From: Takakia lepidozioides
Lineage: Eukaryota; Plantae; Bryophyta
DNA: 64,000 bases
Direction: 5' to 3'
NCBI GenBank assembly: GCA_030704615.1
Contig: CM060732.1
Coordinates: 67,394,001 to 67,458,000, forward strand
In this document: piece after piece, positions 3,244 to 61,887 of the stretch
How positions within the stretch are numbered: position 1 is the stretch's first letter
Layout: each line of letters begins with the position of its first letter
The notes under the pieces: model-generated
Told to the model about the DNA's origin: nothing
Database searches by the model: none
Seen by the model: the letters and a program-made list of their open reading frames with translations, nothing else
Translations under genes and position numbers: made by a program

Positions 3244-4416
3244 CAGTGTTGGGCGGGTAAATCATTTACCCGGATTTACTCGGAGGGTAAATCAGGGTAA
3301 GGGTAAATGATTTACCCGGGTTGGCCCATTTTCTTTACCCTTACCTTACCCTTCATGCGGGTAAATAATCTGAGATACCCATACCCTTCTGAAGGGTACA
3401 ATCCATATACCCTTTACCCGCAGATAAATGTTTTTTGGAGGGTAAATAACAAAAGGGTAAATGACAATCTATAGCCTTTCTTGGGAGCTGGAGGGCCGGA
3501 TGGTGTGATTAGCATTTTAAAAAAAAAAAACAAATTAGCATTGGAATCGAAAACGAAACTTTGTGCATGTAGTTATAAAGATGTTAGGAGGAGCGCACTT
3601 CAAATTCCATGACTGTATTTGATCGAGATATTAATTGTAAGCATCGCCAGGAAAGAGCTCCATCAAGCTCAGATTTGACAAGTAATTCAACCGCCCTGCT
3701 CCGCCTCTCTCTCCGACTGTTTTGGCTTCTTGCAAGCAGGGGCATGGGGGTAGGACGGAAAGGGTTATTTTCGCTATGCATGCATACGATTTCCAGCATT
3801 CATAATTTATCATCATTGAAGGGTATGGGCTTCGACCATAATCGCCCATCTGCCCTTTCCCGGCGATCTCGGGTTATTCTAGTTAATTCTAGGCTCTCAC
3901 TATTCCATATAGCTGTCTCTAGTAATCAGACTGGGCTTGTCCCTCATCCAATGGTATTATAGGGTTTAATTTTTTCCCTACAATAACCAAAATGGCTTTA
4001 TGCCCTTGGGAAAATGGTCTTATTTGGCTTTGTTAGATTATTATCTTTGGTGTGAAGAAACACTCTTATGATCGTCCCTCATATTATACAACTACAATCA
4101 GCCTCATACTAAACCGAAAACTAGAACAAAAATTGATTGCCTTAATTTAATTAGTTATATTTTTTGAGTTGAGCATAACAAACCAAAAATTTATGTATCC
4201 TTCTATATATCCTTTATTTACCCGGTGGGTATATAATGGGTAAATTATTTATCCTTACCCGGTATTTATCCTTACCCGGTCAAAAATATTGGCCTTTATC
4301 TTTTACCCGTAGGATAAATAAATGGACATATAAATAATTTAACCTTACCCTTCCTCTAATTTCTATTTACCCTTACCGGGAGGATAAGCAAAAATCTATT
4401 TACCTGCACAACACTG
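3244..4416. mobile_element. Non-autonomous hAT element
   Basis: TIRs cagtgttgggcgggtaaat / cagtgttgtgcaggtaaat (17/19). 8-bp TSD ctttcgcc / ctttcgac. Many subterminal tttaccc/gggtaaa repeats. Confidence 0.9.
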
Positions 4417-32255: not shown

Positions 32256-32644
32256 TCGTACTAGAGAACGGGCCGTGTTTGGCCGATTCTGCCCGGTAAG
32301 CGGCCTTTGGGCGAGCCCTATGGCCGCGCACAGGGCAGAGTCGGCCAAACACGGCCCCTTCACTGGCGTTAAAAGCAGGTGTGGCGGATTCTCGCCTCTA
32401 CGTGGTGCAATATGATTGCGGTTCGATTATCCCATATCGATTGCCCAGATTCAGAGCCCTGGAGAGGATAAAAACGGGGCGAGCCTCAAACAAATGTTAA
32501 AGGGTTGATGGCTGACAACATGGGCCTAATTGGTAAGTCTGCCGTCCTCTGTTGGCCATCCCTGCCGATTCTGCCCTGGGTGGCCGATTCGGCCTGAGAA
32601 TTAGGCCGAAAAAGTGGCAAAATCTGCCACACCTGCTTTTAACG
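32256..32644 (-). mobile_element. Double-hairpin mini-element (solo relative of unit 59029-59927)
   Basis: Hairpin gggccgtgtttggccgattctgccc / gggcagagtcggccaaacacggccc is joined to an inverted-repeat module cgttaaaagcaggtgtggc...gccacacctgcttttaacg. Confidence 0.8.
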
Positions 32645-33065
32645 TTCAAGAACAGATCCCTGGTATGAACTCAGTATCTGGAAGGCTATGTGGGGGGAAA
32701 GTCTTTGTTTTCAATTCTACCCAGTCACTATGCCAATGGTGGAGTCTGAAGCTACCCCTCTTGTGTATTTTCCCCTTGTGTTCCATCACGTTCATGTGAA
32801 AGGTGACTGCGCTGCAGGGTTCTATTCAGATTGATAGATTGGTTGATCGTTGAGAGACTGGCTCTGACACTGTTTTATCAGTAAATGGTGGTTTGGAAGC
32901 TGATTGGGAACAATACTTACGAATCAGTGACAGGGTAGATTAGTCACTGTGAAATCTACCATCTTCTTTCTAGACTGTACATTTATGTGAAGGGTGGGTG
33001 ATAAATATTGCAGGATTTATTTTCAACAGAGCACAAAAGAATTTGGTCGTGCAGATATGGGCATA

Positions 33066-34168
33066 CCGTCCCTTATCAACGGTTTAGGCATTTTTGTGCC
33101 TAATAATTATTAAAAATCAAACAGACTGCTTAGGCACGTTTCTCCAACCATTTCTCACATTAGGCATTTTCATGCTATAAGTTTTTTGAATTAGGCAGAG
33201 AGAGAAGACTCAAGTCACGGGATGGGCGTAACTAAGAGCCACTTCCCCTTGCGGCTACCGCACCCTTTGGGGGGTGGGCCCTCTGAAAAGGAGTATCCGG
33301 GGTACCGGTGGCAGATATCAAAGGAGAGTGCCTGGGGTAGGGGGGAGCCTCGGGTACCTAGGGGGACCTAGGAGCTCGCTAGGAGATTGGACTCAAGTTA
33401 TCGTTTGTTGGTAATAATGGTGGTCAGAGAGCGGAGTGTTGCTAGGTGGACAGCTTTAAAGTATTTGTGTATAGGGGGATAGGGATTTTAAAGTTCTTGT
33501 GAAGTGCGAAGATATTGGCATTCTGGATGCCACCACGTGTTCTAGCGGTGATGACGGTTAACGACAAGTGATCCAGCCGTGTCTACGGATAGCGAGGATA
33601 AGTGGGGCGTATTTTTGACGTTTTTCTAGAGTGGAGGTGCTAGGGTAGCGTTGAATTAGGCACATGAGAAAAGAAAACATTTATTTTCTTAAGAATAAAA
33701 ATACAAAATAGAAACCCAATGCCCATGAGCCCTTGTCCTATGCCAACAAGCCGAGCTCAAATCTCCTCCAAGCTTGCAGGCTCCAGTTACCCTTCATTTC
33801 CGTGCAAACACTAAAAATGCACCTCTTTGTTGTATGTGGTGATTAGCGAGGTGGATGAATATGATGACATTGTCGAGTCCCATGCAAGGGCCTTTCGAAG
33901 TTACATAGAGCTCTCGCAAATAAATTGGGATTTGTAGGAAGTTATTTTCGCACGCATATATTTGTATTGATTTCTGTTCAATGAACTTTTCATCTTATTA
34001 CAAACAACATGAGAAGAGGCTTAAAAGTATTTTGCTAGAATTTTTAGGCATTAGGCACTTTGGTCCCATAATTTCTGTGCAATTAGGCCAAAATTTGAGA
34101 AATTCCCAAAACGCTTTAGGCACTTTCAATTTGAATTAATTATCGCCTAAACGTTTGATAAGGGACGG
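33066..34168. mobile_element. Tc1/mariner (pogo-type) non-autonomous element containing a LINE 3' fragment
   Basis: TIR ccgtcccttatcaa..gtttaggc at both ends, TA flanks and ttaggca subterminal repeats. 33200-33300 is the reverse complement of the LINE 3' end at 61800-61887. Confidence 0.85.
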
Positions 34169-36232
34169 TAAAGGGACTACTGGCAGCTCTCAAGCCTTAC
34201 ACTTCAGGGAAGCGGGTGAGTGGGAACGTGGGAACCCACCTGGCATTGTCAGGCTGAATTTCTCTGCCCATGAACAAAGTAACACATGTGCTTCCAACTC
34301 TGGTAGGGCACACTAGCCATTCTCTTAGTGGCGAATAATCGCCAGATTTTGACCTCGCGCAGGTCTTGGCGACAGGGGCAAAGGGTAAACTTTTTGCCAA
34401 AAGCTGATTGGTGGGCCCACCATTCGCCAGAGGGCAAGAGGGAGGCACATGGCACCATATTGAATGAAGGCAATTTACAACAGAGGAGCCAGATCCCACC
34501 GACCACCTGCAGGACATCACCCCCTTCCAAGTGGGCGGGAGGACGTGGAGCCAGCTATGTTGCCTATTTTTTTACATATATATATGTATGTATATATGCT
34601 GGTCTCTTCCAAGGTCTCTTGCCTTAGGTCTCTTGGCTGGTGCTAGTGTCATCGTCTGCAATGTGTCGTGAAATATAATCTGCATGACTGTTTACAAGCT
34701 TTGTGAGCCAAGTTACTTGATAATTTTATTTGTATTTCCAAGAGCTTTGCAAACATTGATACTTCTTCTCTCTGTGCCGTGTAGCATTAGGCGGGGTCTT
34801 TTTGGGCCAGGGTTCAAATATGCCACTTAGTGTAGATTGACTGAAATGCAACGTAAGCCAATTTAAGGTTTTGTACTTATGAATGGTGGTTTAAATTTTT
34901 ACTTTTTTGGTGGTGTTTGCCATAATTTCTGCCTAGTTTCCATGTTGAGAGCCTCCAATTTGCTATGGGTTATTCGCCTCAGCAAGTCTACTAGGTTTTA
35001 GGTTCACTCACCCAACACCCATTCAAAATCTCATATTATCGCCAGCCATTTCGACTATGTATTTTGTACAAGCGCCATACGTGCTCCTCTAAGGTTCTCG
35101 TGGATGCCACTTGTGCAACAATGTAAATACCTTAAAAGAAACGCTGGGGCACACTGATGTAGGCCTCCAAAGCTCAGGAGTATCCATGTTGGGGACGCTA
35201 TGGGTGATGACAAAGAATTGGAGCAGCTGCATCATCTTAGGAGACTCGCTAGTAAGGATCAGTCGGTCCATGTGCTTCTTATGATAACTTAATGAGGTCC
35301 CGATTCCAGAATTTTGCAGTTCACTGTTTATGAATATGGGGTTCAGGGTTAGTTACTAATAACCCACCTGGTTGTTGGCAAGTGGTCATTGATGCTTACT
35401 CACGGCTCCACAAGGGAGGTACGTGAGCTGGTGACCAGGACACTCTTTGAATGAAACAATCAGTAGACCTTGGGTAGTAGCTGATTTTAGTCCAACAATT
35501 TTGCGTGGACTGAAATTCAAGGAGCTTTGCTGGAGACTGAGATGCTCCACGTGAAATCATTTCTGTTGTATTGAGCTACCATTTCACTGTCAAGGTCATT
35601 AGACTCCATCACTTCACTATTACAACAACATTTTGTAAATGTTGCTGGTTTGTACGTTTGTACAGCATGTTGTTTTAAACTGCACATTCCAACATAACTT
35701 GGTCGTACCTTAGGAATGTAGCCTATTTTTGTAGTTGAGGTTGTTAGCGGCTCTCCAGCATCCATAGCTCTTTTCCATAGCATCTATCTTGGATGTGTAA
35801 TTCGCCTCCGAGCCAACGAGGGGAGAGCCCTGAGGAACTGCATGTATCAAACCAATGGATAGGCATCTTAAAGCTGATGCAAACTCCTCACATGCTTGAA
35901 AGAATGTGAACCATTAAGTAGGTAGACTGTACTCTGGGCCTGTCTTTTCCAGGTTTGTTTTTTTTGTTTTTGTGGTTTTCAGGTCTGCCCAAGGCCATAG
36001 CAGCCCGCCATAGGTGGCTTCCTCCACGGGAGACGCTGTCTGCTGCCACAACATAGTGTTGAATTGAGGGCACGATCTCCCAAAGCTGTGTTGCATCTGG
36101 AACCCTTGGCCAATTCCTCACAGAGCTTGAGCCTGAGACTCATGTAGGTGTACCACGAAAGCTTGGCTACGACATTTGCCAAGCTTTCCTGTTACAACTA
36201 CACGAGTCTCATGCTCAGTGAGATTGACTGGA

Positions 36233-38383: not shown

Positions 38384-39453
38384 GGAAAGTTGTTCAAACT
38401 GGCAAGGGCAAAGCTCTGGGGCTCACTAAATTTTTCCACTGCAGAGGGGTCAACTCTGAGGTTAAGAAAACCATGCTTTGTCGCGTTATTAGACCTGCCT
38501 TGGAGTACGGATCTGCTATATGGGTTGATAACTCCAACCAGGCTAAGTCTCTAGAATCCATTCAAGTGGGGGTGCTTAAGGAGTGTATGTCAGCATGCTC
38601 CAAAACAGCCAATGTGGCTGTTCGGGGTGAGTTTGGCATTCCGTCCTTAAGCTCCCGACGAGATGAATTCAAGGTCAGATGGTGGGGTCAGAAACTAGGC
38701 CTCAGGAGGGCCTGGGCTTTTGGCTCAGCCTCGAGACTTTCAAAGTTGGTAAACAGGGGTACAGGCACAATACCCTTAAGAGATTTGAAGAGAGCGTCTC
38801 TTTGGTGAGAGAACCCCGGACAGTGTATCAGAAAATGAATACTGTCTTCAGATTGCCCACACAACGGGCAATTGCACTCTCCCTTTCCTCTCTGCTTCTG
38901 TTTGCTGTTCAAAGGTAGGCTTCCTGCCTGAGTTTAAATTTCAGTCTAGTGCCGAGAGTGGGTAGACCCTTGAGGTCATCCAAGATGTCCTCCCCCATGT
39001 CACAGACTGGAAACAAGTTCAGGGAAGTTTCCTGCCTAACTTCATTTTCATCAGACAATCTCATGGCAACAGACATGGCTGAGGACACTACAGCCTCTAA
39101 GTCAGATTTATCCAGCAGGGTCAAGACTTGCGGATCCAGGTCCAGGTCCTTGAGGATCTCTTCTACTCTCTTCTGCCAGGACTTAGCCTGTTTGACAGGG
39201 CGGTCCTGTTTCCAAGATATAGAGGATATCTGGTGTTGGGCATATGTTGCAGCAAATCACACACAGCAGATTGATGCTTGTGTGAAGGGATTTCTAGAGG
39301 ATATCTGGAAAACCCGGATTAATTCTATATATGGAGGTAAGTCTTACTACCAACGTCAGCCCCTGACAGAGGTAGGTTCTGTCCCTTTTGTTCCCGCTCA
39401 AACTGGGCGCGGGGTCAATGGCCACAAGGCTACGGCAAACAACGTCTTATGAG

Positions 39454-40159: not shown

Positions 40160-40900
40160 AATGTACTCATAAGACGTTGTTTGCCGTAGCCTTGTGGCCA
40201 TTGACCCCGCGCCCAGTTTGAGCGGAACACAAAGGGACAGAACCTACATCTGTCAGGGGCTGACGTCGGTAGTAAGACTTACCTGGATATAAAACATTGA
40301 TCCGGGTTTTCCAGATATCCTCTAAAAATCCCTTCACACAAGCATCAATCTGCTGTGTGTGGTTTGCCCAATAACTAGGCCCCAGAAGGGCCTAGGCTTT
40401 TGGCTCAGCCTCGAAACTTTCAAAGTTGGTAAACAGAGATACAGGCACAATTCCCTTGATAGATTTGAGGAGAGCGTCTCTCTGGTGAGAGAACCCCGGA
40501 CAGTGAATCAGGAAATGAATATTGTCTTCGGGTTGCCCACACAACTGGCGATTGCACTCTCCCTTTCCTCTCTGCTTCAGTTTGCTGTTCAAAGGTAGGC
40601 TTCCCGCCCTGAGTTTAAATTGTGGGTAGACCCTTGAGGTCATCCATGATGTCCTCCCCCATGTCACAGACTGGAAACAAGTTCAGGGAAGTTTTCTGCC
40701 TAACTTCATTTTCGTCAGACAATATCCTGGCAACAGACATGGCTTTGGACACTACAGCCTCTTAAGTCAGATTTATCCAGCAGGGTCAAGACTTGCGGAT
40801 TCAGATTCAGATCCTTGAGAATCTCTTCTACTCTCTTCTGCCAGGACTTAGCCTGTTTGACAGGACGGTCCTGTTTCCAAGATATAGATTCGATTATTTC
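40160..40900 (-). mobile_element. Second 5'-truncated copy of the same LINE
   Basis: Closely similar to 38690-39455, in native colinear order on the minus strand. Confidence 0.85.
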
Positions 40901-49489: not shown

Positions 49490-50945
49490 ATATATATATA
49501 TATATATATATATATACCAACTAAAAGGTTGTTGTTGCCAATTCTTTTGAGGTCGGTGTGTTGGTCTTGATATCATGTTTCAAGACAAGAAAAATACGTC
49601 CTAAACTTCAAGCGCTCTCAAAATTATATGTATATCTTAGCTGATTTTACAAAAACAAATGGATGAGTAGTAGCTAGGTTGGGGAGTGGGCACATGGGCC
49701 AAGTAGACCGGCAGGGGAGAAAAGGCTGGCCTAGCAAAATGTTTAGAGGTTGGCCAGCAAGAGGGCATGAAGAGGGGCAACAACACAAAGGGCAGCAAGT
49801 GGGGCAGCCCCACATGTATGGTCAAGCGAGACATGGAGTCGGACAACCCCTCATGTGTGGTTAGGCGAGCAAGAGTTTTGGCTAGTCAAAGGGCATGCAG
49901 TGGGGCAACCCCACAGTGTGGTCAGACGAGCAAGAGTTTCGGCTAGTCAGGGGAGAAAAGGCTGGCCTAGCAAAATGTTTAGAGGTTGGCCAGCAAGAGG
50001 GCATGAAGAGGGGCAACAACACAAAGGGCAGCAAGTGGGGCAGCCCCACATGTATGGTCAAGCGAGACATGGAGTCGGACAACCCCTCATGTGTGGTTAG
50101 GCGAGCAAGAGTTTTGGCTAGTCAAAGGGCATGCAGTGGGGCAACCCCACAGTGTGGTTAGACGAGCAAGAGTTTCGGCTAGTCAAAGGGCGTCAAGTGG
50201 GGCAACCTCACATGTATGGTCAGTCAAGTATGGTCAGTCAAGCAGGATGCTCTACTTTTGGCTAGTCAAAGGGCATTAAGTGGGCAATCCCACAGGTGTT
50301 GTGAGGCGAGCAAGAGCTTTGGCTAGTCAAAGGGCACCAAGTGGGACAACCCCACATGTGTGGTGAGGCGAGCAAGAGTTTTGGCTACTCAAAGGGCATG
50401 AAGCGGGGTCAAGTAAGGCATAAAGTGGGTAACCACACATGTATGGTCAGGCGAGCAAGCGTTTGGATGCCCTTTTGGCTACTCAAAGGGCATGAAGTGG
50501 GTTCAAGCAAGGCATGAAGTGGGGAACCCAACATGAGTGGTTAGGCGAGAAAGAATTTGGCTAGTCAAAGGCATCAAGTGTGGCAACCTCACATGTGTGA
50601 TCACACGAGCCAGAGTTTTGGCTACTCAAAGGGCATGAAGTGGGGTCAAGCAAGGCATGCAGTGGGACAACCCCACATGTGTGGTCAGCCCAGTAAGAGT
50701 TTTGGCTACTCAAGGGGCATGAAGTGGGGCAATCCCACATGTGTGGTGAGGCAAGAGACTTGGCTAGTCAAAGGGCATCAAGTGGGGCAACCCCACATGG
50801 GGCGAGCAAGAGGTTTGGCTAGTCAAAGGGCATCAAGTGTGGCAACCCCACATGTCTCGTCAGGCATGCCGACGGGGCAACATGGAGCCACTGTCATTAC
50901 GGCGGGACTACCTAATTAGTGGCGTTGGTGCACAACCTACTTGTT
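49490..50945 (+). repeat. Minisatellite-rich non-autonomous element (possibly Helitron-like)
   Basis: (TA)n start, ~58-bp ggctagtcaaagggcat...ggggcaacccc units, a near-perfect 236-bp duplication, and a small hairpin plus cttgt at the end. Confidence 0.6.
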
Positions 50946-51052: not shown

Positions 51053-51870
51053 CGTATAGGGTAAGGCCCCAGGACAGGGGCCTTCCTGAAATAGGGGGGC
51101 CAGTGCTGTAATCATACTACTATCGAGAACCAGCAGATATTACGTACAGGGTAATGCCCTGAGTGGAGGGCATTCCTGGATTTAAGGGCCTGACGCCAAG
51201 GGCAGTAGCCCAAGGGGAAGACCCGCAAATGCCCAACACCAGGGGCATTACCCTCCACAAAGAAATGCCAAAAAAATTAAAAAATAACTAATGGCCAGTG
51301 CACTCCACATTGCGTAATGCACTCGAGGGAGCTGATGGGGTGCATTCGGCCAGGTGAAATGCACCCAGATGAATTCTGCTTTTTAACGGCACGATAAATA
51401 CAATTTTTTTTGGCAGTGCTTTACAATTAAGTGAATATTCCAATACTATGAAACAGGACTGGGCCTTCCTGAAATAAGGGGCCCGCCACGAGGCGGTGGC
51501 CCACTGCGGCCCAAGTTTCAGGAAGGCCCCCCTCAGAGGGCCTTACCCGGTGTACAGAAATAGGCTCAAATTTCTTTACGAGCATACAGTTTGGATTCAT
51601 TTCCATCTATGGCCACGATTGCTAGATGGCATCTTTCCTGTGAGCAATCCCTGTTTTTCCGGAAATCGACTGGTGGAAAAGATAAAGATAAAGATAAAGA
51701 AAAGAAATAGATATATAGCTGGAAGGAAAATATGGAAAGAAAATATGAGGAGGAACCTTACGGGCCGTAAGGTGCTTCCAGAGGAGGAAGCCTAAGGTCG
51801 AGAGGATGACACTTTTCGCCTTGGAAGGTACCCTCCACATACACTAAGAAATTTGAGCCAGTTCTTTACA
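51053..51870 (-). mobile_element. Double-hairpin mini-element (inverted relative of unit 58762-59030) with a nested variant
   Basis: cgtatagggtaaggccc...gggccttaccc is joined to gtacagaaataggctcaaatttct...agaaatttgagccagttctttaca. A nested cgtacagggtaatgccc...gggcattaccc lies at about 51143-51255. Confidence 0.8.
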
Positions 51871-53538
51871 ATGTGACAGGGTTAGAAAAGCTGTTTTAGC
51901 TCGTCCATGTTGACAAAATTAGGCTTCCAATGTTCAACTGGAGCTTTTTCATCGGGAGCCTAATTTTGGCAAAATTTTGGATTTTTACCCCATAATTCCT
52001 TTGTACAAGTACCATACATTGCTGTCAGATTTGACGGCACGGTGCCAAAATAATTATTTTTTGGAGGCTGAGTCCATTGGGCACCTCATATTTTATACTC
52101 CAGGTTTCGGCAGTTTAGGATTGAAATTTTATCGCCACCTGCAATACAAGCTTGCGGTATGAGCTCCGCATCTTTAGAGGCCGCACGCGGCCTCTGAGAT
52201 TTTGAGATTTTCCAAATTTTCTTATTTTTGGACAAGCTGAGTATGTAATACTTCTGGATTTTTAGACATATCACTTGAGTTAACTCAAAAATTTCAACAA
52301 CCCAAAATAAAATTAATTTGTGTCGAATCTGCCAGCAACGTAGGGTAGCTGACCCATTTTGCGGGTCAAAATTTGGCATCAGACAAAAAAAAAAAAAAAA
52401 AGTGCTCGCAACAAAGTTAGTTGTCGGCACAACTTCACGACTTAGTTGGTGGTATTGTGACAAAAGACCATGACTCACGAAAGACGACTTACTTGTATGA
52501 GAGGCTACTTACAGTTCCCATCTTTCTTTCTATGTCTGATACTGGTTCTGGATTCATCGATATGGTTCCTCTCCTCCTCAATCTTCTCCCCTGTATATGT
52601 GTTCTTTCCTTCTTAGTCCATGATCTGTTCTTTGGGCCCATCGGCCCGGAGTTTCCCAGTGTCCAGATACATGTACTCTTTCTTTCTAGAATCGCTAGAA
52701 CATTAATTGTGGTTTCTGGATTTGTTCCTCTCTCATGTTTTCATCCATTTTGTCCCATAAGCTCTACGAGCTTTCCGCGGACGTTATAAAGCACCATTTC
52801 ATTTCATTTCATTTCATTTCTTCCAGGCTCAGGTTCTCTTTTGCAGAGGTTCTCCTTCTCACTGTTCTAAGCACTACGATGTTTATTGAGGAAAAGGAGG
52901 CTCATTGATGTTCTCTAGGACCATTAGGCCCCTGACGGATGAGTTGCGACTTTCTTTCTTCGAGCTAGAGCCTTAGCTCGCTCGAGCATTATCGGGCCCA
53001 TCTCTCTTTGTCACTCCGATCCAACACTGCAATTCTAGTCATACTGCCTGTACATCCCTCACGCTTCCTATGATTTCTCCAGGATTTCACTAATAATCTG
53101 ATCCGAAGGACTACAATGTTACAAGGGTACAGCTCGGGTTTTCCTTCCTCTCCCAGACTCTCTAATTTAGGCACTACCACACAGGGGCACTTGCTCAGTT
53201 CAGGCCCAGTCAGAGCTCGAGACTGATAGTAATTGCGCTCACATGCTGTGGGGTCGCATGGCATTGCTACTGCTCACAAGAGTCCAGATAGCTCAGATAG
53301 ATAATCACAGACCTAATCTAGTAGGTGCGACTTATGAGAGATCATAGAACTAGAAACTAGAAGATGCTGCGTCGCACTTCAAAACTCAAGTCTTAGTTAC
53401 GCTAAAGTTCGTGGCAGCTTGTACTGGCACTGGCGGTATCTTTGTTTGTCCCATGAACACCTCCAGCAATTGAGAATTCTCTCCTTGAATTAGTGCGAAA
53501 TCGGATTTGCATGTAATAGTCGAATTTCTTAGAAAAGT

Positions 53539-56538
53539 ATGCAAGGCATTTCAGCGCTTGTTGGGGCGCTCCGAGTCTACAACTTCGAGGCCAAGGTATG
53601 GCGGCCCAAGGGTTTTAATGGGATCTTAATACGGAAGGCCCTAGGTGGGCTTTGCATTATTGTGACACTGATATTTTTGACAGTATCTACACAAGTCCTG
53701 ACTGCATGGCAACCACAATATTGCAAAAGTCAATCTGTGGAAGAAAGTTGTCGAAGGTACTGCACTATACTTCGAGTATCCACTGAGAATTTTCTATTAA
53801 GCTTCCAAACTAGGTGACTAGAAATGATGTACATCAGGACTGCTCTCTCGACTGCTCTTCGATTAGATGTGAAGACATCACCTTACAAGTATAGCACATG
53901 GGGTTCTCTAGTTATCTGTACTTGCGGCCTATTGATGCCGCAGTAGCAGTGCGAACTCTTCTCAGGTGAAGAGAACCGGCAAGTGGGTAGTAGTGCTTAT
54001 AAGAACATTTGTAACTACATTTCTCAACCTGCAATGTCCACCTTACTCGTCTCATGATATTTGAAGTACTGGGAGAACTACGTGGCCGCGCATTAGACAG
54101 TTTAGCATCTGAACAGTCTGAACGAGCCTCGATATTCAAGATATAGCACTCCACAGTGGTAGGTTTCAAGATATAGCGATAAAGAACTGCAGTAACGTCA
54201 CCATGCATCATTTTGCATCGAGAGAGAGAACGTTAGCGTAAGGGCCTCTTCCCCTTGCATACTTGCATACTTGTATCTAGCTAGAATTAATGTCATACAT
54301 CCAGTCTAGACGTCCATCAGTCTAGATGTCCAGTTTAATATCATACGTACGTAATAGATATGATCATTGTGATAGGAGCTAGACTGATGGAGTAAGGGTG
54401 ATTCGATTGGGTGAAGGTGCGGGCTTTTGCACCGTCTTACAGAGAGACAACCTGCACTACATAACAATGATCAATCACATGGAAAGATCGAAAATGGGGT
54501 CGAAGTGGGTGACGATGGGGGAACAGAGAAAATGATGGATTTGAGTGTGACCATCTTCAGCGCTCCCAAACCCTATACGGACGATCTACATGACCCGCAA
54601 CGACAAGCCTTGCTTTCATGGCTGCGGCTGAGACCCCGCCCTCAAGTGGTGCTCATTGGAGATGACCCATCTTTGCACAAAATGGCAAATGAGCTCTCAG
54701 GTAGCGTTCAGGTAGAGAGCATGATCGACTATAATCTGAATGGTGTGCCCCTCTTCAACTCCATGATGGCTCGAGCCCAGGCAGTTGACACGAACGTCTC
54801 AGTAATGATAAATGGCGACATAGTTTTACTGCAAAATTTTATGTCGTCCTTGCACAAGACTGCTGCCACATTTGATGATTGGCTTCTCACAGCTATGCGC
54901 TGGGACACGAGTCAAGACTTTCCCTTCACCTTCGTGCATGGGAGAAGCCTGGATATTGAAATACGTCATCGTACCACAGGCCGGTGCACAGAGTTGAGCG
55001 AGATTGAAGAATACGTGCGGTCAGCTGGTGTTCTACACACAGGTGGGGGTATGGATTGGTGGGCCTGGAACACCAAGAAAAGTGCTACGCCTCTACATTC
55101 TACTCCAATGCCACCCTTCACCTTTGGTCGGGGCCGCTATGATAACTGGATGATGTACCATATGATCGAGGAAGCACCCAGCACGCGGGCTGTGGTGGAT
55201 GCAAGCGAAGCCATCTTAAGTATCCATGTGAAACACAGCTACTCTCATCTGCGAGAAGGTTCCAATTCCTCTCAATACGTTCAATATCGAAAATTCTGGA
55301 CTAAAAACAAGCGGAAGCTTTGGGAGACGTATGCAAACATCTATTTGTCTCAAACAGTCGGCTCATTTGTCGGTGGTACGCTGCAGGGTTCAGTGTTGTA
55401 CGCACCATGGAAACTCATGACATGCTTTGAGCCCGCGCATCAAAATTTATGCATGGTCCGTCGGGTTCGACCTGGGAGTTGTTCATGTGAGTACACGCCT
55501 TCGGTCCAACGTAGCCAAGTTACGAGACATGACGATCATGGAGGAAGGAGAGAGGAGTGGGTCGAAGAGCCTTTTGAAATCGTCGCAACTCCCACTGTGG
55601 ACTCACCACTAGGGTTGCCACATACTTTGGAGCAGTTGCTCCCAAAGGTTGCCGATGACAGTAAAACAGTGGTGCTTGTGGCTGCAACAGCTGACTACAA
55701 GGAGCTGTTGCTCAGCTTCATTTGTCGGGGTAAGGCACTGGGGGTCAAAAATATACTTGTCGCGGCCCTAGATGAGGAATTATATGCCTACGCCTTCACG
55801 CAAGGACTCCCTGTCTACTATGAAAGCAGTGCAGCTGCTCTGATCGAGTCGAGCCCTCCTCATTGTGCTTTCGGTTCCGACTGTTTCAAGTCCGTTACGA
55901 AGGTGAAGTCTCAGGCAGTGCTACGAGTCCTCAAGTTGGGATACAATGTTCTTTGGAGTGATGTCGACATCGAGTGGTTCCAAAATCCGCTCCCTCACAT
56001 GATGGCTTTTGGGCAGAATACATTGCCAATTCAAAGCAATGAGCCCGATGCAATGTTGCCAGCAAATGGACCCTTCCGAATCAACTCTGGCTTCTATTTG
56101 GCGCGATCCGAGATACCCACCATTTCTGCTTTTGAGGAAATTGTGAAGCACGCATTGGCATCCAACAGGTCTGAGCAGCCGAGCTTCTACACTGTCTTAT
56201 GTGGAGACGAAGGAGAGACGACAGTAGGTGAAAAAGAATGCGTGTATGACAATGGACTCCGCGTCATATTCCTAGATAGGAAGCTGTATCCCAATGGTGC
56301 AGTTTATGACATTTGGGGAGAGAACAATGTGAGGCAAGCTTGTGAGAGTCAGGGTTGCATTATTTTGCACAACAATTGGATCAAGAGCAGAGCGGCAAAA
56401 TTGAGAAGACAAGTTGAGAATCGATTGTGGTATTACGACGTGGTAAACCGGATGTGTATTCACCCGTGGCACCCTTTAGCTCTGCAAGATCGATTCCATT
56501 TCCAGACTCAAGTCATGAAGAGCTTGAAGCTTGTCTAA
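53539..56538 (+). CDS. RAY1: RAY1-like beta-arabinofuranosyltransferase (GT77 nucleotide-diphospho-sugar transferase), type II membrane protein
   Basis: Open exon 54443-56538 encodes an N-terminal GT-like domain (TIFSAPKP, GVPLFNSM, INGDIVL) and a GT77 domain (VLWSDVDIEWFQNP, INSGFY, SEQPSFY, LHNNWI). Putative first exon 53539-53756 encodes a signal anchor; intervening small exon(s) are unresolved. Confidence 0.85.
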
Positions 56539-57788
56539 CGAATTTCATAGTACCAGGCATGCGAACTAGACAACTTTGGAGTCACCTTCCATATACGACT
56601 ACTCTTCTGAACCAGATTGCCTGTGTCTCTGAACTTGATCCCAGCTTGGCTGAATTCAACTTCCTCCTGTCTTACATGTTTGTGGCTTATACTGTAGATC
56701 GATTCAGTTGCACTGCTGCCATTTCACCATCGATTTCGCTTGTGTTGCATTATCTTACAGAAGATGTTAAAGCAACAGCATTTTGTAATTCTACTATTCC
56801 AATGAGCTCTTGAATGCTGCAGCCTTTTCAGATATTCAACACCTTTCAGGCTGATGAAATCAGCTACTATGGAACCGATAGTAGTAACAGATTGGATGCT
56901 CGACAACCCAATCTCAAGCCTAGTCCGTAGTACTTTCAGCAACCCGAGTACACATGGTATTAGTATGAGCCATGTTGGGCAGGTGCAGATCCAGCCCACC
57001 GCCGCCTCTTTACTCTTTCACCCAACATGCCATACCTTGAAGTCCTTTCTCTCCTTGATCAAGAGTTTTTTTCTGTTCAAACCTAACATGATTGATGAGA
57101 AGAATCTCTGCATTGCAGACGACTTGGAACCAGTTTTCCTGACCACTTGCAATTGGTTTGACAAAATATGCATATGTAATGCAAAAGGCTTTTGAAACAT
57201 TTTTATTTTCTATGGGAAACCATGTATCAATATATAAAGCGAGGTAGTTTCAGTGTTCTGTAGCGTTCGTTGAGATCTCCCCCAATCGCGGGCCCAGCCC
57301 TGGTGCCCTAGGAAAGCCCTCGGTGAGGAGGGGTGCGCACCAGCTTGGTCTCTTAATTTTTGGACCTGTGATGTGGGAGACATGGAATTTCAAGTACATA
57401 ACTGGTTTTGGTGTCTTATTATGTATTAGATAATGTCAATGTGGAGGAGCATTATCGAGAATAATCCGAGCGGCGAGTCTGCTGCGAGGATTATTTGAGA
57501 TTGCTTTGACGGATGGACATTATCTTACTTAATATGTCGGTATGGCTACTTGTCATCCAACGTTTCATCCAAATGGGTTTTCATCCGACGTATATGGAGA
57601 CACCTACATATGGAGACAATTATCGCTAATAATATCATACCTGATTCAGGAGAAAAAAACAGCCATTCGACTATTAAGGTACTTTTTAAGGTTTTTCCTG
57701 GCTGGTCTTGCGTCATCTAGAGGCTACTAATATAAACCGTCAGATCGTCGCATATATGTGTCATATCGATGGCCCATATCCAGTTGAT

Positions 57789-60192
57789 CGTAGCCGTTTG
57801 TAGTACAGTTGACCAACGGTGGGGAGACACCAGTTACGCTCTGGATCGGGTGCGGTGGAGCCCCTTCCACCCTACCGGAACGCAGGCTCGCCCTAACGGG
57901 CTCGCCACGTTCCTAGGTGGAACGGCCGTTCCATAGTATGTAAACGTTGCTTGAATAAAATCCTTTGCATTCTCGGTTGGCCTATACCTAACGCCCTAGG
58001 AGCAGTTGAAGATGGAAAGTAACCGAATTTGGGTGGCGTTCCATCCCGTAAGGTCACTCCTACCACCATTCCCCCATTTTCGCGTCTTTCCAGCATCGTA
58101 AAGCCCTATGAGATTTTTTCCTATAGCTTTATGGTGGCGGGTTATAGAGCAGAATCGAGGGTACCGTACTTACCTAGCTTATTAGGTACTTCCGCGCCTA
58201 ATAATTAATAAAAATGGAATATTATTAGGCAGATTCGTTTTTATTATTTAGGCACCTCACCGAGGTAATTTCCAAACATTAGGCATGTATTACAGTCGGT
58301 TCTGGATAAAATGAACAATTGTTTTTTACCTCCCTTAAAACCTATTGTTGAGGTAATTTTCTTTTCAAAAAACATAAAAACATTTTTTCAAGCAATTAGG
58401 CACTTCTCAGGAATTTTTTCCAAGTTTTAGGCATATTTTCCAAAAATGTTCTAAATTTAATTAGGCACTTGATTTTGAATTTGCCTAATAAGCTAGGTCA
58501 GTACGGTATTAGGGCCTCACACCTGAGCTCTCTCCTGGGCGTGTGAGCTGCCCCTGAGCAGGAGCTTACACGTAAGAATTGAGAACCCTGCAACGAGGGC
58601 AAAAACGTGTAAGGCTCATACAGCCGCTCATCTAACCTTGGATCTACGGCATACGCAGGGTTCCATCGGACTTTACGCAGGGTGAGGCATTATCCTGCGG
58701 GGCTCCTCGTATTACACGGCCTCGGTATTGGAAGTCCCGCGGGATAATGCCTCATCCTATACGTAAAGAACTAGCTCAAATTTCTTAGGGTATGTGGAGG
58801 GTACCTTACTTGGCGTAAGGTGCCATCCTCTCGACCTTACGCTTAAAGTTCCTCCTCAATCATGGCCGTAGATGAAAATTAATCCAATCCGTTTGTTCGT
58901 AAAGAAATTTGAGCATATTCCTTTACGCCGGGGTAAGGCCCTCTAAGGGGGCCTTCCTGAAACTCGGGCCGGCCTCGTGGCGGGCCCCTTATTTCAGGAA
59001 GGCCCTTGTCCGCGGGCCTTACCCTATACGTTAAAATCAGGTGTTGAGTATTCTGCCGCTTTTTAGACTAATTCTCAGGCCGAATCGACCACCCGGGGTG
59101 TACTGCCGATTCGGCATGCTGAATCGGCTAGTATTGCCGATTATGCACCCAGGGAGGCAGATTCCCAGGTATGTGTCATCAGCAATGAACCCACCCGCCA
59201 TTCCCTTGCAGCTCACCCCGGTTTATATCCAAGGGGTTCTGAATATAGGCAATCGATATGGGATATTTCAAGCCCAATGGTATTGCGTTTGGCGACCATA
59301 CTGGGGAACTGGGTCATGAACAACCAGATGTGACAGGCATCTGGTGGGATCATGGTGGATGGAGAATTAAAGAATTTGATGTAAATCAAATTCCCTGTGA
59401 AATTGAGAAGGAAAGATTGTCCAAACGATTCTTTCAGAGGTTCTTGGAATTGCCAGACGGTTGTAAAGAAAACATTCTTAAAAGAGTGCATGATGCTGAC
59501 CCTGAATGGGGTTTGGAGAAAGGAGTGATAAAGATTTATTAGGTGGCCTGTAGAGGAAGAGCACGTTGGTTACCAACACTAGTTTATGTGATAGCATTGC
59601 TATCCATTAAGCGAGTAGAGTTTGAAGGCTGGGAGGAAAGAAATGTGAATGTTTATACTCATATGCATGAAGAGCTTGTACTGGTAAAGAATTGGATTCC
59701 AAAGGATATTTTGTGGATCAAACTCACACCAAGAACAGCAGGCAGCCTGCCAAACGTGGTCAAGAAGGGGTTGGCTTATTGATTGTGAGATTATCAAACA
59801 AGGGTTTGCGGTATGAGCACAGCATGAATACTCCACAACCTGATTTTAAAGCCAGGGCCGGGTAGGGAGGCCTTGCCCACTGCCGCTTACAGGGCAGAAT
59901 GGGCCCTACCCGGCCTGTTCTCTAGTACTTTCCAGCAGCTTTCCAAAATCAGACAAACCAAAAGATGGGGAAGCAAAAAAGATGCCGCAGCGAGGGAAGA
60001 AGCCTAACTTAGAAGAAATTTGGGCGCCTAAAAGAAGGGACGCGTGGGGGATTTTTTTTTCAAGGAACGTTTACGCAGAGTAGTAAGGGCAGTAGGCCGT
60101 CACACGTTTGCGCCACGGGTCACTCGGGCTCCCCACTCGTTCCCAGTGGCTTAAACGTGTGACAGCCCTTGCGTGAGGCTCTTACCCTACAC
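57789..60192 (+). mobile_element. Head-to-tail and nested array of at least six double-hairpin mini-elements
   Basis: Units at 57789-57940, 57939-60192 (host), 58097-58572, 58571-58763, 58762-59030 and 59029-59927. Most show two inverted-repeat modules and share a CG with their neighbours. Confidence 0.75.
58164..58506. mobile_element. Tc1/mariner (pogo-type) MITE
   Basis: TIR ccgtact(t/g)acctagcttattagg, TA flanks and ttaggca repeats. Confidence 0.9.
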
Positions 60193-60542
60193 TTTTGGTC
60201 GCTTGAAATTCGTGAAAAATAGCAAAGTGGGCTTTTGTAGAACAATGACGGGGGATCTCCCAAACTGCAAGATCTCTCAATACATAGGGGATTGCACTTG
60301 GACTCAAATGACACTGGACACTTGGGCCAACAGCACAGTCTGGCAACGTAGTTTGTTTCTTTTGTAGGGTTGAGATGCCCCAACCGGCGGGCCAGCCCTC
60401 GTGCTTGGTACCGGTGGAAATGAGGTACACTGGTTTGGTCTCATGATTTTGGACTGTCTCCGGTGTGGGAGATATCGAATTTCAAGTACTTTTGGTCACT
60501 GGAAATTCGTGAGAAATAGCAGAATGGGCTGGAACAATGATT

Positions 60543-61887
60543 GGCCCTTCATTAGCACCATCACCGTGCCCGAAATCTCATTGCCGCCATTGTCAACATG
60601 ACCATTTCTAAAAACCATCCAGTCCACATATTCAAAGTCCGCACGCACACTGGCATTTATGGCAATGAGGAAGCACACCTACTTGCTCAACTTTGCGCCT
60701 CCAAACCCAAAGCGACCCCATACGACCCTATCCATATCGCCCATGCCCATACCCACCCCTTTTGGTTTATACACCCGTTCCAGACCCCCCTGCACCTAGA
60801 CCAATCCGTAATCTTCTGACCACTCTTACCCGGGAAGCAAATAAACAAGCTGCAGCTTCCATCAGCCACACTAAAGTACACAATAAAAAACAGACTCAAT
60901 CCAATGTACTGCACTACAAACTCTCAAATCACTCTTGGCTAACCAAAGTTACCACTGACGCACAAATCCGACAAGCACTCAAAATTCAGATACACCCAGT
61001 ACATGACATCAGCGCAAAACATATCTTCTGGCCGCATCTATTCTCATCCCCTACAGCCCATTATACTCAACTACTCACCAAACACGTGACACTTGGTCGC
61101 ACCTCCTTAGTCAATGTACGCACCCAATTATACATGGCCTTTATATCACATGTCATAACCACGCAATCTGGTATCTCCATAAGCTCTTTCTAAACCGTGT
61201 TGAAACCCGATGGTTCTCACTTATTAACGCTGGCACCTACCAAGGTCGGCCTCTATATCACACTGGTCTACAATGGTACTACCATGCATATGCACCCGAT
61301 CACCATGCTCCTGCCCCGCTAGGCCTTGCCCGGACATACTCCTTGTCCAGGGCCTACCCATTAACACCCTGCCACCCACCTCACCATCCCCACAACTCAC
61401 TATATACTTCATTGAATTTACATTCTGCCATGATCGATACCCCAATGACTCGATTATAGAAAAACGGCAAAAGTATGTCCCGCTTATCCTCGCAATCCGA
61501 CGACATAGCTGAAAAACCGACCCATGAACCGTCATCACCGCCGGTACTCGAGACGGTATTCATAACGCCAGTATCAACGACATACATGATAACTTCAAAA
61601 TCCCCATCTTCCCTATCCACAAATGTTTCAAAGCAATCCACATCACGACGCTCCGTTCCCTCACAGCTATTATCACCAACAAACGCCAATTGGAATCCGG
61701 CACTCCAAACACACCCTAGATCCCCCAGGGTACGCAGGGGTACCACAGATCACTCTATTTTCTACGGTCACCTGTGTGTCCCACATGATACATTTCTTTC
61801 TATAGGGCCCGCCCCCGAAAGGGGCAGTAGCCGCAAGGCGAAGTGGCTCTTAGTTACGCCCGCTTCGGCCGGAGTCTTCTCTCTCTT
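60543..61887 (+). mobile_element. 5'-truncated non-LTR retrotransposon with RNase H, zinc knuckle and RLE (Dualen/RandI-like)
   Basis: HIFKVRTHTGIYGNEEA (RNase H C-terminus), DTWSHLLSQC...CHNHA and PDILLV...IEFTFCHD......KRQKY..L (PD-D/ExK RLE). 3' end agtcttctctctct is also seen at about 49030-49110 and 33200. Confidence 0.8.

Follow-up and report, generated by a model that had tools for sequence, protein, structure and literature searches.

Polar chains of double-hairpin elements with the terminal layout of Helitron2/Helentron transposons

Helitron2/Helentron (HLE2) transposons and their non-autonomous derivatives, HINE and DINE-1, share a typical organization of termini: an inverted repeat at the 5' end, its partner in subterminal position at the 3' side and a stem-loop before the 3' end (PMC3627910, PMC4067079, PMC11417382). 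In Helitron2, the 5' ATIR is separated from the 5' end by 0-2 bp, and the 3' ATIR is located upstream of the 3' hairpin (PMC3627910); Helentrons and HINEs are described as having subTIRs and a 3' palindrome (PMC4067079). HLE2 elements have been reported in land plants, a moss included. Tandem insertions of Helitrons are reported from bat, fly, rice and maize, and non-canonical insertions of Helitron2 in Chlamydomonas display variable TSDs, 7-19 bp and longer.

Elements with this layout were found in the 64-kb stretch of DNA analysed here (the window, taken at its full length). Nine units, representing seven solid families (O, D, A, B, C, E and G), are arranged in three clusters. The main array (57939-60192) consists of five units, and the same terminal grammar recurs in two further clusters on the minus strand, at 51053-52384 and 32258-32644. 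No additional units were detected in the 64-kb window beyond these three clusters, either by a motif-free scan for a hairpin preceded by a long inverted pair or by a scan of all strong hairpins. Positions of all features are listed in Table 1.

Table 1. Units, junctions and flanking repeats of the three clusters, in window coordinates
Feature	Position	Strand	Ends, stems and remarks
Possible decayed units upstream of O	57789..57938	+	end CCATAGTAT followed by G; could be CpG-decayed TAC/G junction
Unit O (outer)	57939..60192	+	5' arm 57939-57960 pairs with 60054-60075; 3' hairpin, inner stem 60095-60119/60143-60167; 3' end CTTACCCTACAC, 60181-60192
10-bp direct repeat CTTTCCAGCA, left copy	58086..58095	+	flanks the D-A-B1-C1 chain within O
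Unit D (short)	58097..58572	+	5' CGTAAAGC pairs with GCTTTATG; 3' hairpin end GAGCTTACACG; split by an unrelated TA-flanked TIR MITE, 58162-58508 (347 bp)
Junction D/A	58571/2	+	ACACGTAAG
Unit A	58571..58763	+	5' end CGTAAGAATTGAGAACCCTGC; partner arm ends at 58677; 3' hairpin 58679-58758 with 26-bp stem and tail ATACG
Junction A/B1	58762/3	+	ATACGTAAAG
Unit B1	58762..59030	+	5' arm 58762-58787 pairs with 58900-58927; 3' hairpin 58931-59024 with nested stems and tail TATACG
Junction B1/C1	59029/30	+	ATACGTTAAA
Unit C1	59029..59928	+	5' arm 59029-59053 pairs with 59826-59851; 3' hairpin 59856-59915; 3' end TTCTCTAGTAC
10-bp direct repeat CTTTCCAGCA, right copy	59928..59937	+	starts at the last C of C1
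Fragment H	52339..52384	-	3' hairpin and CAGCTACCCTACG; adjoins 5' end of G via shared CG
Unit G	51871..52340	-	5' end CGTTGCTGGCAG at 52340; partner arm ends at 52017; 3' hairpin, inner stem 51975-51907; 3' end decayed, CCCTGTCACAT
Unit B2 (family B, copy 2)	51053..51870	-	5' end TGTAAAGAACTGGC at 51870; 3' end CTTACCCTATACG at 51053; 3' hairpin broken by inserted piece
Direct repeat TATTTCAGGAAGGCCC, left copy	51461..51477	-	flanks piece inserted into B2
Unit E	51143..51425	-	within piece inserted into B2; 5' end TGTAAAGCACTGCC; 3' hairpin 51254-51148; 3' end CATTACCCTGTACG
Direct repeat TATTTCAGGAAGGCCC, right copy	51078..51094	-	flanks piece inserted into B2
Unit C2 (family C, copy 2)	32258..32644	-	5' arm at 32644 pairs with arm ending at 32367; 3' hairpin 32364-32263 with 35-bp stem; 3' end TTCTCTAGTAC

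In each unit, the 5' end YGTWAA (arm 1) pairs with a distant arm ending in YTTWACG (arm 1'). The second stem (hairpin 2) is a GC-rich hairpin, the 3' strand of which is conserved as GCMTTACCC and followed by unpaired TAYAC(G). End words are CGTWAAR plus arm at the 5' side and GCMTTACCCTAYAC at the 3' side; the units start with CGT or TGT and end with TAYAC(G), the final G being absent from C1 and O, which end AC/T. Inverted repeats are placed as in HLE2: the 5' arm begins at the first base in all nine units and its partner stops 80-120 nt short of the 3' end, with the exception of D, where the partner is found about 440 nt from the 3' end and a MITE lies inside. The stem-loop between right inverted repeat and 3' end is also present in every unit, 0-3 nt past arm 1' and 4-6 nt before the end. 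Hairpin 2 always follows arm 1', in the same orientation and with the same asymmetric tail, in nine units of seven families and three clusters. A 5' hairpin that includes the 5' inverted repeat, as described for Helitron2 by Bao and Jurka (2013), is absent from seven of the eight units in which the first 50 nt were folded, their folds being comparable to those of shuffled sequences; only C2 reached z of -1.8. Later definitions of HLE2 do not require this hairpin.

Folding of the units as single-stranded DNA reproduced the two-stem shape. The z-scores were -9.21 for B1, -5.45 for A, -9.30 for C2, -5.46 for E and -5.27 for G, and none of the shuffled sequences matched the observed fold in any of these five. 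Duplexes between the two arms, D apart, range from -13.7 to -30.1 kcal/mol (the latter in C2), compared with shuffled means of -5.5 to -7.8; the most stable shuffle for A, G and E equalled the observed value or was within 0.5 kcal/mol of it. The outer pair of O (57940-57960 and 60054-60074) displays 90% complementarity over 21 nt, with a duplex energy of -20.8 against -5.6 kcal/mol in shuffles, and when the inner chain is removed, O folds as a 412-nt two-stem unit. Among the five units of the main array, support is weakest for D, since its arm duplex (-6.8 against -5.0 kcal/mol) is no better than shuffles. Comparison of copies points to selection on structure. Arms of C1 and C2 have three compensatory and 18 conserved pairs out of 25, a double change in B2 adds a G-C pair, and stems are retained at 79-90% identity between copies. 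Both stems are kept by compensatory change while the interiors of the families are unrelated.

These data bear out the claim of the first-pass annotation that the array is built of double-hairpin units sharing one terminal grammar (folds with z from -5 to -9, junction words confined to clusters). Its coordinates and motifs are as described, except that C1 ends at 59928 and not at 59927. The number of units, given as at least six, has to be lowered. The segment 57789-57938 folds weakly (z = -1.64, with 11 of 200 shuffles as good), and therefore only five units are solid within the span. Sequences are unrelated between families, as had been noted; the window holds, however, one further, diverged copy of B and one of C. 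B2 is 89.6% identical with B1 over 268 aligned bases, the insert left out, and C2 is about 80% identical with C1, which contains about 560 bp of additional internal DNA absent from C2. The copies have different neighbours: B1 sits between A and C1 and B2 after G; C1 follows B1, and C2 has another flank.

Adjoining units belong to different families and have one CG in common, with single-base precision. The head-to-tail order in one orientation through a shared CG, reported in the first reading of this locus, is seen at all three junctions of the main array, and the chain D-A-B1-C1 is indeed enclosed by the long stem of O, so that four units lie inside the first hairpin of another. The junction word TAYACGTWA occurs four times in 64 kb, each time within one of the three clusters, which together cover 6.5% of the window. 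Most units have its part ACGTWA at either end, and the junctions share it. Flanking or terminal CG lengthens the pairing of arms in seven of nine units when CpG decay is allowed. The insertion site does not conform to a plain T/T: with ends placed provisionally from at most two copies per family, the right flanks begin with T in seven of nine cases if G is counted in the element, and T (D, E, B2) or A precedes YG at the left. What is unusual about the locus is that unrelated families are chained so precisely, with a CG in common.

As judged from flanks in the window, single units lack a TSD, and in none of them is either stem bordered by a TSD of fixed length. Flanking repeats were seen only around composite inserts and not around single units, one pair being 10 bp and the other about 16 bp in length. 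Copies of the longer repeat are identical at 16 of 17 positions, with looser similarity extending over about 28 nt. The piece that they flank, inserted into B2, holds unit E together with a 5'-truncated upstream fragment, and the approximately 44 nt after E start like the 5' end of another unit (GTAATATC). We considered 51143-51053 as a separate unit; it is better described as carried-over donor flank followed by the right copy of the repeat and the 3' end of B2.

Coding content was examined with Pfam in 17 ORFs (16 of at least 150 aa and one of 73 aa). No Helitron, helicase or any transposase domain was detected in or near the arrays, nor was any RepHel, Y1 Rep or recombinase gene found among these ORFs of the 64-kb window. 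The 73-aa ORF (60598-60819) is RNase H-like according to Pfam and represents LINE remains adjoining the array. C1 carries an ORF as cargo, which has no match in Pfam or in a word-indexed protein search; exact protein look-ups with this ORF and with the neighbouring 703-aa ORF were empty. Matches of the C1 ORF in an exhaustive search were dismissed as spurious, as they came from a repeat-driven match of 18 residues that occurs 27 times in repeat proteins. A 22-base word specific to family B gave a single match in metagenomes, in a low-GC bacterial contig, which is clearly due to chance. Rfam yielded no match at gathering score in the whole window and two sub-threshold chance matches in 57600-60400, and ARAGORN identified no tRNA-like sequence.

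It is reasonably likely that the units are non-autonomous HUH rolling-circle transposons of the HLE2 type, that is, deletion or filler derivatives which have preserved the terminal signals only. Non-autonomous mobility and a single-strand HUH (rolling-circle) mechanism, both put forward in the first-pass annotation, are supported, the latter as the best reading. Its suggestion of a possibly undescribed class is probably wrong, because the layout of the termini is the published HLE2 architecture, which has been reported in mosses, and because duplications of variable length have been published as well. The units probably represent a known kind of element, and by shape a clear example of it.

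A different single-strand HUH system, Replitron-like (with Y1 Rep) or IS200/IS605-like, would insert on the 3' side of a CG, which would be recognised through its pairing with the terminal CG of the 3' arm. IS608 reads its TTAC target in this manner. The extension of arm pairing by CG in seven of nine units (again allowing CpG decay) is consistent with it, and so is the piece holding E, with its 44 nt of downstream donor DNA and its flanking repeat. IS200/IS605 enzymes are not known to act as transposases in eukaryotes. Replitrons are found in mosses, liverworts, lycophytes and ferns, and Replitron-1 of Chlamydomonas combines orientation-specific insertion and a right-end hairpin with fuzzy right ends and variable TSDs (PMC10288648). 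However, a Replitron has, by definition, short direct repeats at its termini, whereas repeats of our units are inverted, and it is on this point that the Replitron proposed for the locus fails. Moreover, C1, O and C2, the units at chain ends, do not repeat their own 5' word at the 3' end, and no Rep gene is present in the window. We consider an HUH system of this other sort unlikely. The same probability is assigned to an undescribed eukaryotic family of single-strand DNA elements, HUH or tyrosine recombinase and distinct from HLE2, with attC-like joined ends, site-specific for a resident CG and forming integron-like arrays in a streptophyte nuclear genome. Less probable still are cassettes moved by a Crypton- or integron-like tyrosine recombinase, where a circle with an attC-like bulged hairpin recombines at the ACGT/CG core of resident units. 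The shared CG fits a recombinase core equally well, ACGTWA marks either end of most units as well as the junctions, and the arrays are polar and composed of unrelated cassettes; arm 1', hairpin 2 and arm 1 would together give an R''-L''...L'-R'-like site with the junction at its base. On the contrary, crossover yields no flanking duplication of 10 bp or about 16-28 bp and no carried donor flank, so that the duplications are left unexplained by the Crypton-like candidate of the first-pass annotation. Cryptons have neither hairpin nor TIR ends (PMC3627910), in contrast to the long inverted repeats and hairpins seen here. The window contains no recombinase gene, and the missing G at the ends of C1 and O also argues against such a core.

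Retroposition of SINE-like, LINE-copied sequences would explain the variable duplications and the 5'-truncated pieces. Direct repeats indeed differ in length (10 bp and 16-28 bp), the insert in B2 includes a 5'-truncated upstream fragment and LINE remains are adjacent to the array, but the units have no poly(A) or simple-repeat tail and no tRNA, 7SL or 5S-like head, and the inserted pieces end at different types of 3' end. Base-precise junctions and long compensated pairing between 5' and 3' parts are not features of SINEs either, and this origin is very improbable. We give slightly less credit yet to ordinary nested DDE MITEs or foldback elements whose ends would be similar by chance. A true TIR MITE does reside inside D. 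The units themselves are not ordinary MITEs with TIR and TSD, as had been stated for this array, since no fixed TSD accompanies either stem; the constant position, orientation and tail of hairpin 2 and the restriction of all four junction words to the clusters also speak against this reading. Two independent MITE classes were rejected as well, hairpin 2 never being seen apart from arm 1'. Spliceosomal and group II introns were discarded: starts of the units are GTAAG-like, but AG/AY ends and exons between units are absent.

If the units are HLE2 derivatives, the chains could have been formed as follows. A RepHel encoded elsewhere in the genome would recognise the 3' hairpin and nick a fixed few bases past it, around TA/CG or AC/G. 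Circularisation that joins the two ends, or contact of a unit with the conserved CGTAAAG of its successor, may allow arm 1', hairpin 2 and arm 1 to stack as a single long, bulged hairpin whose base carries the nick site. A resident 3' end would therefore resemble the substrate of the enzyme more closely than any other target, and it is exactly there that new copies would land, producing polar head-to-tail arrays of unrelated families. Missed termination might carry neighbouring units or flanking bases along, giving rise to chains and fuzzy ends, and carried-over composites would be resolved with target duplications of variable length, as in Chlamydomonas Helitron2. It is a reasonable inference, originally suggested for this array, that elements use their own ACGT-like end as a target.

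As HLE2 derivatives, the units would constitute an unusually clean natural data set on the terminal structures needed by the transposase and on target choice by rolling-circle elements. Two long stems under compensatory change in at least seven unrelated families bear on the requirements for HLE2 ends. Base-precise insertion at the 3' end of a resident element would connect Helitron-type targeting in eukaryotes with IS200/IS605 and replication origins, in which, as a rule, the target resembles the end, and would account for the assembly of cargo-carrying composite Helitron arrays in non-seed plants. In annotation work, chains of this kind can easily be taken for nests of MITEs or hairpin-RNA loci. 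The significance would be far greater only if the enzyme proved not to be RepHel.

Comparison with named systems specifies these relationships. Helitron1 likewise has a 3' hairpin a few bases before its end, no TSD and captured genes or filler. It differs by the lack of inverted repeats, by 5' TC and 3' CTRR and by insertion between A and T, none of which applies here; CGT/TGT starts, TAYAC(G) ends and long inverted repeats exclude the units from canonical Helitrons. Integron attC sites and subterminal hairpins of IS200/IS605 are folded single-strand sites preserved in shape and not in sequence, with crossover or nick at the hairpin base, polar arrays of unrelated cassettes and a target choice that mirrors the element's own end. 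These systems are, however, prokaryotic and produce no flanking duplications, and plant nuclear transposons are not known to use IntI or TnpA. Replitrons (Craig 2023) also occur in non-seed plants and algae, are copied and pasted by HUH enzymes and possess a right-end hairpin; those of Chlamydomonas show fuzzy right ends and variable TSDs, and the terminal word TAAAGG of Replitron-1 resembles 5' GTAAAG. They are set apart by their direct terminal repeats and by Y1 Rep, which is absent from the window.

The closest agreement is with HLE2 elements, namely HINEs, DINE-1, Helitron-N of Chlamydomonas and Selaginella and HelenSM92 of Sphagnum, which have the same terminal layout. Common features include the lack of regular TSDs, orientation-specific insertion, unrelated interiors with common ends, tandem insertions, variable TSDs at imprecise insertions and presence in non-seed plants. 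There are differences as well. Arms are 14-29 nt long here, compared with the published 8-16, and 3' stem-loops span 60-100 nt instead of palindromes of 5-10 bp; the ends are CGTWAA and TAYAC(G), with no consistent 5' hairpin, and no RepHel partner or other autonomous copy with these ends is found within the 64-kb window. Finally, in contrast to described HLE2 elements, junctions are formed at a shared CG and not at T/T, and nearly every copy in the window abuts the end of another family.

Direct reading of 57500-60500, combined with an inverted-repeat scan and exact word positions, identified five plus-strand double-hairpin units (see table). This agrees with the first-pass annotation, which had described 57789-60192 as an array of chained double hairpins, except that the leading part of this span (57789-57938) is not convincingly structured (z = -1.6). 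Each unit starts with YGTWAA, and its initial 14-29 nt (arm1) are complementary to a distant arm (arm1') with YTTWACG end. A GC-rich hairpin (hairpin 2), with GCMTTACCC or a variant thereof on its 3' strand, follows 0-3 nt past the distant arm, and the unit closes with 4-6 unpaired nt, TAYAC(G). D and A, A and B1, and B1 and C1 are joined by a single shared CG, and the long stem of O (arms 57940-57960 / 60054-60074) encloses the whole D-A-B1-C1 chain.

Coordinates of double-hairpin units in the window
Feature	Position	Strand	Basis
Unit O	57939-60192	+	reading, inverted-repeat scan, exact word positions
Unit D	58097-58572	+	reading, inverted-repeat scan, exact word positions
Unit A	58571-58763	+	reading, inverted-repeat scan, exact word positions
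Unit B1	58762-59030	+	reading, inverted-repeat scan, exact word positions
Unit C1	59029-59928	+	reading, inverted-repeat scan, exact word positions
Fragment H, unit G and unit B2 with unit E inside B2	52384 to 51053	-	same grammar
Unit C2	32644 to 32258	-	same grammar

The same organization recurs twice on the minus strand, outside the span originally noticed, and these clusters contain second copies of families B and C. Copy B2 has diverged from B1 (89.6% identity over 268 aligned bases), and C2 from C1 (79-83% identity in the common 5' and 3' parts), the interior of C1 being about 560 bp longer. This extra interior harbours a 175-codon reading frame (59258-59782) that is interrupted once by an in-frame stop (59540-59542). 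This frame has neither a Pfam match nor a real homologue in protein databases; its database matches are artefacts, namely one 18-residue match to repeat proteins. Neither a motif-free scan nor a scan of every strong hairpin revealed further units in the 64 kb. The window has four occurrences of the junction word TAYACGTWA, all within the unit clusters, which span 6.5% of it.

When folded as single-stranded DNA, the units reproduce the two-stem shape exactly. No shuffle equalled the observed z-scores (B1 -9.2, A -5.5, C2 -9.3, E -5.5, G -5.3), and O without its inner chain folds like the other units. In eight of the nine units, arm duplex energies are 2-4 times the values obtained with shuffled arms; the D duplex does not exceed its shuffles, and in A, G and E the observed energy is almost reached by the best single shuffle. 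In the long-range stem of C1 versus C2, 18 pairs are unchanged, three are changed on both sides (T-A to G-C, A-T to C-G, T-A to G-C) and four positions are unpaired in one copy. Sequences of their 3' hairpins differ extensively, and a long stem is formed in both. The inner helix of B2 is longer by one G-C pair, owing to changes on both arms. Arms of different families are unrelated past the first 6-7 nt, yet always complementary. Judged from these comparisons, compensatory pair changes and retained complementarity are evidence that the two-stem structure is under selection.

Families B and C are each present in two copies whose neighbours differ (B1 between A and C1, B2 after G; C1 after B1, C2 after other DNA). 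Single units therefore move on their own, and such lone movers still abut the 3' end of another family base-precisely. No target-site duplication of its own was found for any unit. A perfect 10-bp direct repeat, CTTTCCAGCA, flanks the whole D-A-B1-C1 chain (58086-58095, 59928-59937), and direct repeats identical at 16/17 nt (51477-51461, 51094-51078), more loosely similar for about 28 nt, flank a piece inserted in the 3' hairpin of B2. Besides unit E, this insert contains an 11-nt fragment resembling a 3' end, 17 nt of other DNA and 44 nt whose start is like the 5' end of yet another unit. Chains or their parts are thus at times mobilised as a single piece, which brings along donor flank and is accompanied by target duplications that vary in length. 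Left flanks of units end in W before YG; right flanks start with T in seven of nine cases if G is counted within the element, C1 and O ending in AC before T. The shared CG extends arm pairing in most units and, with two copies per family to judge from, might represent the upstream 3' end, the downstream 5' end or a target requirement.

The window is CpG-depleted eukaryotic nuclear DNA (observed/expected 0.58) rich in repeats; neither tRNAs nor Rfam families at gathering score were found across it. Just upstream of the plus-strand units, an uninterrupted 703-aa ORF (54427-56538) contains a plant-type nucleotide-diphospho-sugar transferase domain (Pfam PF03407). Its best relatives come from zygnematophyte algae (Mesotaenium, Closterium) with about 50% identity (45-56% across best homologues); no exact or near-exact protein match is on record, and no land-plant proteins are among the named matches listed. 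These relationships identify the host as a streptophyte. Just downstream of O (60192-60540), a local repeat in direct orientation, about 45 nt long (CTTTTGGTC...AAATAGCA), is found at about 60192 and 60489, and an RNase H-like ORF fragment (60598-60819; PF00075, E 0.0025, under the Pfam cut-off) probably represents what remains of a LINE. A separate TIR MITE family, with CCGT... ends and apparent TA flanks, has one copy within D (58162-58508; 25-nt TIR, 96% complementary) and a longer one on the other strand (33062-34172); its interior is full of GCCTAA/TTAGGC words.

The minus-strand array directly adjoins a satellite-like block (49712-50865) in which 236 bp are perfectly duplicated in tandem (49712-50183) and a subrepeat of about 60-68 nt is present about 11 times, each copy with a CCCCACATGTGTGG-type palindrome. 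Immediately before H lies a minus-strand run of about 18 T (plus-strand poly-A, 52385-52402), which may represent a plus-strand retroelement's tail; the array would then have formed within that element or next to it. Overlapping palindromes built on GGGTAAAT/ATTTACCC and GGGTAAGGGTAAA words are densely clustered at 3250-4350. They look like putative subterminal binding-site arrays of another transposon, and their GGGTAA core is similar to the hairpin 2 foot. A pair of direct repeats, each about 550 bp long (38680-39452 and 40231-40888; 90-95% identical, 1.66 kb apart) and accompanied by 54-72-nt inverted repeats (39252-39323 / 40296-40367), is probably another nested element.

The layout of the units is that published for the Helitron2/Helentron group. 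The Helitron2 inverted repeat has its 5' copy 0-2 bp from the 5' end and its 3' copy upstream of the 3' hairpin (PMC3627910). Helentrons and their non-autonomous HINE/DINE-1 derivatives, formerly misannotated as MITEs, carry 12-15 bp subterminal inverted repeats and a 3' palindrome (Thomas et al., PMC4067079). The group is present in six of eight sampled land-plant classes, including a Sphagnum example (PMC11417382). Imprecise insertions are described for Chlamydomonas Helitron2 non-autonomous elements, with TSDs of 7-19 bp and longer and extra captured flank (PMC3627910). Tandem Helitron insertions are published for bat, Drosophila, rice and maize, as are homologous head-to-tail arrays from rolling-circle replication. 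The units therefore most likely belong to this described group, and not to a new class, as was initially thought possible. No RepHel (Helitron-type transposase) gene was detected among the 17 window ORFs run through Pfam, so that membership is argued from architecture and behaviour only. Replitrons, also put forward originally, occur in non-seed plants, and in Chlamydomonas their ends are fuzzy and their TSDs variable; by definition, however, they have direct terminal repeats (PMC10288648), which the units lack, and they fit less well. TC...CTRR ends and A/T insertion of canonical Helitrons are likewise absent.

A single-strand HUH mechanism with own-end targeting by a putative enzyme, already suspected in the first-pass annotation, is the best reading. 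RepHel encoded elsewhere would recognise hairpin 2 and nick the DNA a few bases beyond its 3' side. Once the ends are joined in a circle, arm1', hairpin 2 and arm1 would make up a single long bulged hairpin whose distal stem has the nick site at its foot; in the array, the conserved CTTTACG of one unit and CGTAAAG of the next could form a 7-bp version of this foot. Resident 3' ends may thus mimic the enzyme substrate and serve as preferred landing sites, which would generate polar arrays of unrelated families, while missed terminations would yield co-moved chains, carried-over flank and variable duplications.

In contrast to published Helitron2/Helentron elements, seven of eight units lack the 5' hairpin given for Helitron2, arms and 3' hairpins exceed published lengths several-fold, and the insertion site is not plain T-T. 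What remains novel is the great length of the co-varying stems and the fact that different families are chained base-precisely through one shared CG.
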